NCBI GenBank assembly: GCA_964057225.1
Contig: OZ059898.1
Span: forward strand, 16,430,001-16,494,000
Length of the DNA stretch: 64,000 nt
From: Auanema rhodensis
Taxonomy: Eukaryota > Animalia > Nematoda
Direction: 5' to 3'
Position numbers and translations under genes: made by a program. The notes beneath the pieces were generated by a model. The model was not told where the DNA came from. It saw only the letters and a list, made by a program, of their open reading frames with translations, and made no database searches. This document shows, one piece after another, positions 43,855 to 50,145 of this stretch (position 1 is the stretch's first letter; each line of letters opens with the position of its first letter).

Positions 43855-45634
43855 ATGCCACAGAGACAAAGGATGAAGCCGCCCTGTGCTGTATGCGGAG
43901 AACGAGGTGATGGAGCACATTTCGGAGCGGAAGCCTGTCGGTAGGGCTAAACCTTTACTATTCTTAACTTAACTCGTAACACTTTTATATCTTATCTTTA
44001 TTTTCATTTTACTAGAATTTGGTATCAAATTTTGCTTTTCCTAGAGCATGTGCAGCTTTCTTCCGACGTTCCGTAGCTCTTAGAAAAACTTATGTATGTC
44101 GTACAGCTAGGGTGTGTTCTATATCATCAGGTTCATAACGGGTGTTCAATTATTGTCATACTTTTCAATAATTCAATTTACATTTTTTTAAATTCTCTTT
44201 TAGCTGGTCGATGTATGTGTCGGGCTTGTCGGTTTGAGAAATGTTTAACAGTTGGAATGCAAAAAACAGGTTATCACAGTAATTTTAATTGAAATATTTA
44301 CCAATGCTACAAAAACAGTTAACATACCTTTATTATGTAACCATTATGCTACTTTAAAAATTGCTGTTTAGCTGTACAACGTCATAGGGATATGCTTGGA
44401 AAACGTAATGATGGTTTAATTAATCGAACAGACTTCCACTCTTCTCCGGTAATTATAATTGAAAAAAAAAATTATTTCCTATTTTAAGGAGCCCTCAATT
44501 TTGGGAACAGATCAAAACATGCCTTTACTGAATAGATTTTTTGAGCAATATTCCTTATTGGAACAAAAACGTCAAAAATATCATCATGGAATTTCAGATG
44601 AATATCAGGTATAACAAAAATAAACAAGTACTGTTCAAACTGTTCAAATATAATTATGAAAGATAACATCTAACAATTTTAATGGGAAAACATAAGCACA
44701 AAAGTAAACCATTTTTTCAGAAATCATATTCAAAAGCTTTATCATACAAAGAAGCTAATAGGATAAATGTGAAGGAAATTCCTTGGATAATTGATGTTGT
44801 CGTTAACACGTTTTCAGACTTTGCTTCCTTAGATAGTTCTCAAAAAGTCAGCATATAGCCTGCTTATTTTATTCTAGATATTAAAAGCTTTTTTTAAGAA
44901 ACTATTGTTTGGGGCATTTTATTTACCATTCATGTTGCTTGAAACGGGATATTTCGCCACATTAAAAGGTTATTTGCTATCTGAAATTTAGTAAAACGTT
45001 TTTATAACTATCCAGATAGATCAGACATTTTATACTTACCGTCAGGCGATTTTGTTGATGCTCGACATCCAGAAACATTCTATGTAGATCTCGATGGAAA
45101 ACAACACATGCCTACTGAAGAAGCCGTTAGGTGACAATGATCATTATTTCTTATTGAAATTTGCTTTTATAGATTATTCGCACCTTCCTTTAACATTTAT
45201 CGGCGGAATATTCTTGATCCTATGAGGGAATTAAGGGTAACCAACTTTGAATTTTTGACTCTCTGCTGCTTTAGTTTATGGGACCATGGTAAAAATTAAT
45301 CATTTTGGCGAAGACTATAATTATCTTTCAGGTTTAGAAGGCCAAACAAAAGATTGTGAAATAGTTTCGGATAGAATAAGGAAGCAGATAGTTGATGAAA
45401 TATCATATTATCATAAGCATGTAGTACAATGCGTGGAGCCTACTGCTCGCCTTGCAAGTCTTTTCATTTTGCTTCCTGCTTTACAAGTATCCTGTAAAGT
45501 GATAATGAATATCTAATTGAATAAAGTTTCAGAGAGCTGTTCGTCGATTTCAAGAAGATGTTGAAATCAGTAATGTCTTTAACGCATATTCAGTTGATAA
45601 CGAATTTTACGATATAGTTAACGGAAGACTCTAA
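43855..45634 (+). CDS. Nematode supplementary nuclear hormone receptor (HNF4-derived NHR)
   Basis: [29 protein letters not shown]...CRACRFEKCLTVGM zinc fingers followed by a spliced ligand-binding domain. Upstream exons are possible. Confidence 0.92.
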
Positions 45635-45663
45635 CATATAACAATAAATATTCGACAAATAAA

Positions 45664-46529
45664 CTAAAATGATGTCTTTTGTAAAGATTGTACTCCAAGC
45701 TTAGCATGAAGATCAGGCAAACTGCACTCCCAATGATTTTCCCAATCAAATGCAATAAACAATCGTGATGAATTGGCTTGCTCTATTACCCATGGTAAAT
45801 ATTCAGACAAAAGTTGCTCGCGATTTCTGTAAAAGAACCTTAACTTTTTTTCTGAAAAATTATTGAACAAACTTCTTCTTAAGGCGAGCCCCACCCAATA
45901 TTGCGGCAGAAATACACATTGGAAATCCTAATTGTATAGCCTCAAAATATTTAACAGCTACCTAAATATATATATATATATATGTATAATAAAACAAAAA
46001 AACCTCGCCGATCATATTAGTTTTCATTTGAAGAACAATATGAGTGAAGTCGTGCGTTTCGCGGTACCTTTGCATGACATAAAGATAATCTGGATCATTG
46101 ATGTATTTCACAACAGGTCGAGCATCAGGGGACGTTTTCAAATGTTCAAGAAACCTGCACACAAAAAGCACTGAAGATTAATCAACAATTTAAAAAATTA
46201 ACCTATAATACTCCTTGCCCAAAGTACCATTGGGTAGTGATTGTAGATATTTTCGATCAATTGTAGAATTATTTATTCTGGGCTGTTCTTTAAGAAGTTT
46301 AGCTCCGGTTGCATCTTTTTCCATACGATATCTTTATGTGAAAATTCCGATTGCAAGAAAGTAATATTTACTTGATATTCTTTAGAATGAAAGGGAAAGC
46401 CGTTGCTTCTCCCATTGCTGCTACCATATCTCCTCGTTTTGGATCGCGGATAGCGGCAGCGGCAGATCCAAGTCCAAGTAAAACTCTTGAGGTAAACGAT
46501 AACGGAATATGTGAGTTGTACAGCATCAT
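45664..46529 (-). CDS. coq-4: Ubiquinone biosynthesis protein COQ4
   Basis: LYNSHIPL...[54 protein letters not shown]. Confidence 0.93.
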
Positions 46530-46590
46530 ATTGCAAATATCCTTCAAATAGTAAACTGAACAGTTTAATATGTGAAGTAATTATTTTACC

Positions 46591-47064
46591 TTATTCCACA
46601 GTGGTAGTTCCGTCAGGGGTAAACTGAACTCCTCTTTTAACTTCTTCACCTCTTTCAGCAAGAATTTGTTCAATGTTTTTCCCCTTTAAAAAAAAACAAT
46701 TAATTCAACTACTTTTGAAAAACCATTGAGTCATACCTTGAAATCTTCAAACCACCCCAAATGATCAGCTATAATGTGATGGTTACTACAACCAGTACAA
46801 GTAACAATAACCACACCCTTTTCGTATGATGATCTTGAGAATGTCTTGGGACCCTAAACTTGGTTATATACAAAGTAAAAGAAAAATAAGTACTTGTCTG
46901 GATCCGCAAACTTTGCAAGTATATTGAATAGAGAGTTGAGGAGTTTGTCTTCCAAGTTCTTTTGGATTACAGAGCAATCTAGTTGTTTGAAAATGACGTT
47001 GAAAACTCACAGGTTTAAAATATAAGCTACACAAAACTTTACAAGTCGACAAAGATTTCAGCAT
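46591..47064 (-). CDS. DNLZ: Mitochondrial DNL-type zinc finger protein (DNLZ/Zim17/Hep1)
   Basis: Basic presequence-like N-terminus; [10 protein letters not shown]|[35 protein letters not shown]...[12 protein letters not shown]. Confidence 0.92.
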
Positions 47065-47248
47065 AAAGCTCTAAAATAAAGGGTAGTTATATCTTTGTAC
47101 GTAACATTTTTGGTTTAATATAAGTTGTAGGATTAGTAACCAAGAAATACAGTTTCCAACACACATCGAATTTTTATTGCGTATAAACATTGTAGGGGCG
47201 CATAATACATTGGCATGGAGATCAAGATTACTCAACGAACTGTTAGTA

Positions 47249-50145
<2,897 letters not shown>

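Follow-up and report, generated by a model that had tools for sequence, protein, structure and literature searches.

In the nematode Auanema rhodensis, the gene for DNLZ, the escort protein of mitochondrial Hsp70, lies directly upstream of coq-4, whose product serves coenzyme Q synthesis, and the two are joined in RNA by an ordinary cis-splice. Both lie on the minus strand of the 64,000-nucleotide (nt) stretch analysed here (contig OZ059898.1, positions 16,430,001 to 16,494,000; hereafter the window, with positions counted from its first letter). We think it likely that they form a single mature bicistronic messenger RNA (mRNA) of ancient origin, from which COQ4 would be translated by leaky scanning and perhaps by re-initiation as well. 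The spliced RNA is present in assembled transcripts, its layout recurs in other nematodes, and its first cistron is depleted of AUG; that the RNA yields COQ4 protein, and by which route ribosomes reach the coq-4 start, we infer. The products belong to the expected families, zf-DNL (DNLZ-Hep1-Zim17, PF05180) for DNLZ and Coq4 (PF05019) for coq-4.

Only 61 nt (46590-46530) lie between the DNLZ stop codon (TAA, 46593-46591) and the coq-4 ATG (46529-46527), and inspection of these 61 nt found no AATAAA, all as an initial annotation of the window had described; its coordinates hold on the minus strand. That annotation also proposed that a donor one base past the stop (AAG|GTAAAA, GT at 46589-46588) pairs with an acceptor just before coq-4 (TTTGAAG|, AG at 46543-46542) to define a 48-nt intron (GTAAAA...TTTGAAG, 46542-46589), a length within the range of neighbouring introns (40-53 nt). 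Our RNA data are contigs assembled from four sequencing runs of one study (X1-X4), which contain about 64% of the words sampled from the window, roughly its exonic share; because every predicted intron with GT..AG ends is skipped in them, we take the contigs of all four runs to represent cDNA. In each run one contig spans the region from the DNLZ 5′ end through coq-4 by way of the splice 46590|46541, so the 48-nt segment is an intron in use rather than a chance GT..AG pair. The joint is listed as 46540/46589, skipping 48, with a cut of +1 and CT..AC ends on the plus strand, which corresponds exactly to 46590|46541, and in the X2 contig the record positions run uninterrupted (…322 | 323-416 | 417…), with nothing between the two sides of the joint. 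The mature RNA reads …GAATAAG|GATATTTGCAATATG…: the DNLZ stop is retained and the coq-4 AUG follows 13 nt on, in a different frame. This spacer consists of the G at 46590 plus GATATTTGCAAT (46541-46530) and puts an A at position -3 of the coq-4 AUG. A single mature RNA with both complete open reading frames (ORFs), the TAA-13 nt-ATG arrangement that the initial annotation had put forward, is thus seen in contigs of all four runs, and cDNA of six other nematodes agrees with it.

What the contigs demonstrate directly is only the splice joint: RNA carrying it exists, and its path was kept in all four assemblies. The joint might nevertheless be an artefact of assembly or stem from an unprocessed nuclear precursor, with two mRNAs linked through rare read-through RNA, and the same contigs do join coq-4 to a convergent gene, so contigs can merge transcripts. 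However, the two sides meet at an exact GT..AG splice, which genomic read-through would not produce, the assembler kept the path in four of four runs, and equivalent joins occur in other species, in runs and studies unrelated to ours. We consider this explanation very improbable.

In the cDNA contigs of the six other nematodes, a complete or partial DNLZ ORF is followed immediately by the coq-4 ORF. In five of the six, -4 to +2 nt separate the DNLZ stop and the coq-4 ATG; the gap is 15 nt in the sixth, a filaria-like species (L009) whose contig shows the DNLZ C-terminus, TGA, 15 nt and ATG. In the closest relative (L001, whose COQ4 is 73% identical) the stop overlaps the coq-4 start as TAATG; Strongyloides-like contigs (L005-L008; 11 contigs from several runs) read TAA-AA-ATG; one from a Joint Genome Institute (JGI) metatranscriptome (L011) reads TAA-G-ATG; and both L010 (SRR3401559) and the Pristionchus-like L012/L013 have an ATGA overlap. 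The DNLZ stop is kept in every one of these contigs, and no fusion transcript was found among them.

Genomic sequences show how differently these similar junctions are encoded. The Brugia pahangi layout is the same as that of the window: TGA, a donor one base past the stop (G|GTAAC), an intron of ~330 nt that holds several ATGs, an acceptor (TTTTCCAG), 16 nt and ATG. In Pristionchus entomophagus a 44-nt GT..AG intron lies just before the stop, and its removal discards an in-frame TGA and yields the form seen in the L012 cDNA (…EIAK stop, ATGA overlap). In Strongyloides ratti the intron is absent from the junction and the ORFs overlap by 8 nt. The stop-to-start gap in mature RNA is 13 nt in the window and -1, 2, 1, -4, -4, -8, 15 and 17 nt elsewhere; none of the eight other cases thus falls outside -8 to +17 nt, while the distance in DNA varies by hundreds of bases. 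Overlapping or closely spaced stop and restart codons, as expected for termination-reinitiation, are therefore present throughout. In B. pahangi an ATGA stands at the DNLZ stop itself (L004, 3644-3650), although in the spliced RNA the coq-4 ATG comes only 17 nt later; this ATGA may survive from an ancestor in which stop and start overlapped as they do in Pristionchus. The Pristionchus-like contig L012 (1-830) starts with the end of spliced leader 1 (SL1; CCAAGTTTGAG) and carries, 75 nt upstream of DNLZ, an ATG-rich ORF of 245 amino acids (aa) without a Pfam match, which may be an upstream gene of the operon that the assembly has joined on, or may belong to a real longer RNA; in L013, the contig from a sister run, only 6 nt precede the DNLZ ATG.

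The pairing of the two genes is widespread. A search of a representative library with coq-4 exon 1 returned mainly exon-sized fragments, together with one 339-aa protein, P0024, in which zf-DNL is followed by Coq4. With P0024 as the query, gene models combining the two domains were retrieved from clade III (Onchocerca, Litomosoides, Dirofilaria, Thelazia, Syphacia, Enterobius and Dracunculus), clade IV (Strongyloides ratti, Aphelenchus, Meloidogyne and Globodera) and clade V (Pristionchus, Heligmosomoides, Haemonchus placei and Strongylus). All Caenorhabditis entries were Coq4 alone, the genes being unlinked there. A search with a DNLZ protein added pairs in Ancylostoma ceylanicum (consecutive locus tags) and Toxocara (same contig). 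In Nippostrongylus brasiliensis separate DNLZ and COQ4 products (P0153/P0156, P0228) share the single locus tag Q1695_008360, so in at least one annotation the pair is already handled as a single gene that has two coding regions. In Haemonchus contortus, for which our basis is a 2011 paper alone (a look-up with the COQ4 protein matched no contig), hc-bh4e20-11 and hc-bh4e20-10 are the same pair in the same order, the F53A3.7 orthologue and then coq-4; the two are co-expressed, and a leader is recorded on neither (PMC3156134).

The initial annotation also raised the possibility of a fusion protein, in which an alternative GT at 46598-46599 would bypass the DNLZ stop and join the proteins in frame (...TTT|DICNMM...), with DNLZ providing the mitochondrial presequence. 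The frames do fit, and zf-DNL+Coq4 proteins are found in many nematode annotations. Use of this donor is another matter: the joint 46599/46542 appears in no contig of the four runs, contigs being prone to drop rare variants, and retention of the DNLZ stop in the cDNA of all six other species argues against fusion there. The fused models do not agree with one another either, since the point at which DNLZ joins Coq4 differs between species and in the S. ratti model the join must skip the 8-nt ORF overlap. Fused models or adjacent genes occur in clades III, IV and V; the many models that unite the pair do so inconsistently and look like annotation artefacts. The further argument that COQ4 lacks a presequence of its own is weak. 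In all nematode COQ4 proteins of our hit list only 3-6 residues precede the conserved LY..H.P core, which in other animals starts at about residue 45-60; judging from these sequences, the whole phylum, Caenorhabditis included, has lost the N-terminal extension, and the argument fails because Caenorhabditis COQ4 starts just as close to the core with no DNLZ neighbour. On the cDNA evidence and the mutual inconsistency of the models we reject the fusion, to which we give next to no credence.

One indication of how a bicistronic RNA might be translated is the distribution of AUG. Between the 5′ end of the mature window RNA and the coq-4 ATG (400 nt), the sole ATG in any frame is the DNLZ start; the 126-aa DNLZ reading frame has no internal ATG in any frame, and the 394 nt between the two start codons contain none, leaving the AUG-free interval that leaky scanning needs. 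The coq-4 coding sequence (CDS) has 16 ATGs in 690 nt. Counts between the two start codons are similarly low in other lineages: 0 in the window, L007, L011 and L012, and 1 each in L001 and Brugia, where the ATG opens a 4-codon ORF near the 5′ end (L001) or is the ATGA at the stop, a 2-codon ORF (Brugia). The total over these six lineages is 2 ATGs, against 13.2 expected when synonymous codons are shuffled and 24.8 when all codons are; in 20,000 shuffles none gave fewer than 5 (synonymous) or 10 (all-codon). The unlinked DNLZ of Caenorhabditis auriculariae, a better control than the non-nematode one below but a single one, shows no depletion (2 observed vs 2.6 expected), nor do the coq-4 CDSs (10-19 vs 10-17) or the gene upstream on L012 (14 vs 10.8). 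A non-nematode DNLZ likewise has 9 ATGs vs 9.3 expected, but is a poor "monocistronic" control because it is itself on a three-ORF contig. Internal methionines are also low in nematode DNLZ proteins (0.57 vs 1.34 per 100 aa), which is weak evidence taken alone. The non-nematode cDNA contigs (L015, 29-2005; L016, 98-1969) carry consecutive Tim10-like (PF02953), zf-DNL and KTI12-like ORFs with gaps of 21 and 69 nt and no AUG depletion; they may represent a polycistronic transcript or an operon precursor.

Start contexts point the same way. The nematode start consensus has an A at -3. In the window the DNLZ AUG has T at -3 and C at +4, and the coq-4 AUG has A at -3. Of eight sequences compared, five (the window, L001, L011, L012 and Brugia) carry a pyrimidine at -3 of the DNLZ AUG, and at -3 of the coq-4 AUG seven have A and one has G. 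The weak-then-strong pattern thus holds in most of the other species, not in all. Leaky scanning predicts an AUG-free first cistron and contexts that go from weak to strong, features that re-initiation can do without; re-initiation predicts tight stop/start spacing, which leaky scanning does not need. We therefore rank leaky scanning first and regard re-initiation as a likely contributor. The initial annotation had named stop/re-initiation as the candidate mechanism: the tight spacing agrees with it, but the AUG-free cistron and the weak DNLZ AUG point first to leaky scanning.

We propose the following sequence of events. The primary transcript would probably start in an operon with the upstream mcm-7-like gene, and leader trans-splicing at 47071 would free the 5′ end of the DNLZ-coq-4 RNA. 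The DNLZ/coq-4 boundary would not be resolved by polyadenylation and trans-splicing; the 48-nt spacer would be cis-spliced as an ordinary intron, bringing stop and AUG to within 13 nt of each other. DNLZ would be translated from the first AUG, in its weak context, and subunits that skip it would scan ~390 AUG-free nt and start at the strong-context coq-4 AUG. Ribosomes that finish DNLZ a few bases upstream of that AUG may re-initiate there. A plausible origin for the arrangement is an old operon in which the outron became an intron once a donor arose at the end of DNLZ. In the early 1990s Conrad and colleagues reportedly found that a trans-splice acceptor of C. elegans switches to cis-splicing when a donor is added upstream of it, and we propose this as the step taken at DNLZ/coq-4. 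Taken as a whole, this is the history towards which we lean: a bicistronic mRNA, born of an outron turned intron before clades III, IV and V split, that would yield DNLZ and COQ4 through leaky scanning of an AUG-free cistron, with stop/start coupling as a backing.

The boundary upstream of DNLZ shows what a resolved junction looks like at this locus. The ORF list and rebuilt gene models place three consecutive minus-strand genes here, the end of an mcm-7-like gene, DNLZ and coq-4; the first label rests on the naming in the initial annotation and weak Pfam matches to the MCM C-terminal region only. The last mcm-7-like coding exon (47249-47461, stop codon 47251-47249) is preceded by an intron (47463-47508) that the contigs of all four runs skip, and is followed by an AATAAA at 47173-47178; contigs end at 47168-47170 in three runs and at 47127 in X1. 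Six bases before the DNLZ ATG stands an acceptor (TTATTTTAG|, 47071-47072) that is likely a spliced-leader addition site: the DNLZ contigs of X1, X3 and X4 begin at 47072 with 3, 1 and 0 unaligned letters, and that of X2 extends to 47097. The ends at 47072 likely carry a leader, to judge by where they fall and not by any leader read in them. From the mcm-7-like 3′ end to the DNLZ acceptor is ~100 nt, where the contigs break, and this is the spacing described for C. elegans operons (PMC1657053). The boundary (47071-47178) thus looks like a textbook operon junction, and the locus therefore has the look of an operon in which the final two cistrons are not separated.

A more conventional account would extend such resolution to DNLZ/coq-4: the acceptor at 46542 would mainly take a leader, by a zero-gap SL1-type or an SL2 reaction, monocistronic coq-4 would be the translated form, and the cis-spliced RNA would serve only DNLZ or be a by-product. 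The DNLZ 5′ end does behave as a trans-splice site, and C. elegans coq-4 is itself a downstream operon gene, lying behind pgk-1 in CEOP1124 (PMC3156134). Operons of SL1 type without a spacer exist (PMC9258526), and because assemblers remove 22-nt tips, a leader at 46541 would be invisible in contigs. The junction itself fits such an account poorly. There is no 3′-end signal or poly(A) site of its own ~100 nt before the acceptor, as an SL2-type junction would have; with AATAAA absent, only 48 nt would have to accommodate both a 3′ untranslated region and a spacer. The poly(A) site for DNLZ that the initial annotation suggested looking for in the gap left no trace, since no contig of any run ends there; the assembled RNA runs unbroken through the cis-splice, although minor separate mRNAs could go unseen in contigs. 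The zero-gap SL1-type operon that had been offered as a further possibility is not supported as the main route, bearing in mind that short leader tips are clipped. In S. ratti, L001, L010 and L012 the ORFs overlap or abut without an acceptor region of their own, and because of the overlaps the account is inapplicable to some species. Nor does it predict a conserved AUG-free upstream cistron, and in H. contortus a leader is not recorded on the coq-4 orthologue. We regard ordinary operon processing as unlikely, and retain the bicistronic mRNA as the better explanation.

Several points weigh against that explanation and should be set beside it. The RNA evidence from the window consists of contigs from a single study, and because assemblers clip short tips and pop bubbles, they could conceal a fusion isoform of low abundance, a poly(A) site within the 48 nt or a 22-nt leader at 46541. 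Since the contigs also merge coq-4 with the convergent downstream gene, their continuity is not proof of one molecule. Re-initiation after an ORF of 126 codons is normally inefficient. Finally, the DNLZ AUG of Strongyloides and Brugia has a purine or an otherwise acceptable context, so the weak-context rule is not universal.

The gene models behind these statements are as follows, all on the minus strand. DNLZ has three exons: exon 1 (46894-47064) begins with the ATG at 47064 (context cTTTATGc) and is joined to exon 2 by the junction 46894|46853 in all four runs; exon 2 (46737-46853) encodes the zf-DNL core (PF05180, E 2.8e-18), its ends fixed by contig joints; and exon 3 (46591-46683), reached through the joint 46737|46683, ends with the TAA. 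The five exons of coq-4 encode 229 aa and jointly span positions 1-219 of the 221 of the Coq4 profile. Exon 1 (46372-46529) matches profile positions 1-47 (E 1.5e-11), exon 2 (46203-46331) and exon 3 (46004-46154; E 6.9e-19) follow, all three supported by contig joints, and exon 4 (45873-45961) fits the contig record positions, its joint at the TA repeat 45954-45996 not being listed; exon 4 and exon 5 (45664-45826, stop codon 45666-45664) also match Coq4, and the X2 contig ends beyond the latter at 45583. In the region 45331-45826 there is a convergent gene on the plus strand (intron 45487-45532), and its ORF resembles the ligand-binding end of a nuclear receptor. Three runs have contigs in which this gene and coq-4 run together, so the 3′ ends of the two genes overlap or abut. 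The closest relative, L001, likewise has a convergent minus-strand ORF (1087-1485), 25 nt past the coq-4 stop.

Bicistronic mRNAs translated by leaky scanning or re-initiation are known, as are nematode operons; what is new is the cis-spliced junction, the depth of its conservation and its occurrence in a trans-splicing phylum. The rule in nematodes is that polycistronic transcripts are resolved into single-gene mRNAs by spliced-leader trans-splicing, and DNLZ/coq-4 would be an exception whose junction has been sealed by cis-splicing and long kept. If our interpretation is right, no conserved gene pair coupled in translation in this way would have been described in nematodes before, and dozens of false fusion gene models would be accounted for; the zf-DNL+Coq4 proteins that appear in the annotations of many parasitic nematodes are probably mispredicted. 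Together, an upstream cistron free of AUG, start contexts that go from weak to strong and the closeness of stop and start would form a readable signature of translation. Obligate co-expression of DNLZ and COQ4 hints that the mitochondrial Hsp70 system may be connected with how the coenzyme Q synthesis complex is assembled, and a pair of this type could act as a compact natural two-protein cassette in nematode transgenes.

The known systems nearest to hand each share part of this arrangement. As in the SL2-type operons of C. elegans (CEOP1124; PMC3156134, PMC1657053), same-strand genes would be co-transcribed from one upstream promoter, and the mcm-7-like/DNLZ boundary matches them; DNLZ/coq-4, in contrast, has neither a 3′-end signal nor a ~100-nt spacer, and its mature RNA stays bicistronic because the boundary is removed by cis-splicing. 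Tight packing, with the downstream acceptor at the end of the upstream gene, is shared with operons of SL1 type that lack an intercistronic region (Williams et al. 1999, cited in PMC9258526). Those operons are, however, resolved into two mRNAs by SL1 trans-splicing that competes with 3′-end formation, whereas at DNLZ/coq-4 the site acts as a cis acceptor because a donor sits one base past the stop. The authors who reported the H. contortus pair read it as a possible new operon; neither a bicistronic mRNA nor an intron nor a mechanism of translation figures in their account (PMC3156134). Our literature search, which was not exhaustive, found no prior account of DNLZ/coq-4 as bicistronic, or of nematode bicistronic mRNAs that stay unresolved. 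Among viruses, caliciviruses and influenza B use termination-reinitiation at overlapping stop/start signals (UAAUG, AUGA). The ATGA and TAATG overlaps or 1-2-nt gaps of five other species, and less closely the 13 nt of the window, are like these signals (reviewed in PMC10275272), but re-initiation has no need of the AUG-free upstream cistron seen here. By analogy, the nearest mechanistic counterpart is the polycistronic mRNAs of green algae, in which one capped mRNA carries two out-of-frame ORFs, the pairs are conserved between species, and translation is by leaky scanning, with the context of the upstream AUG setting the product ratio (PMC7896298); DNLZ/coq-4 differs in belonging to a trans-splicing animal, in having an intron in its spacer and in keeping stop and start within -8 to +17 nt of each other.

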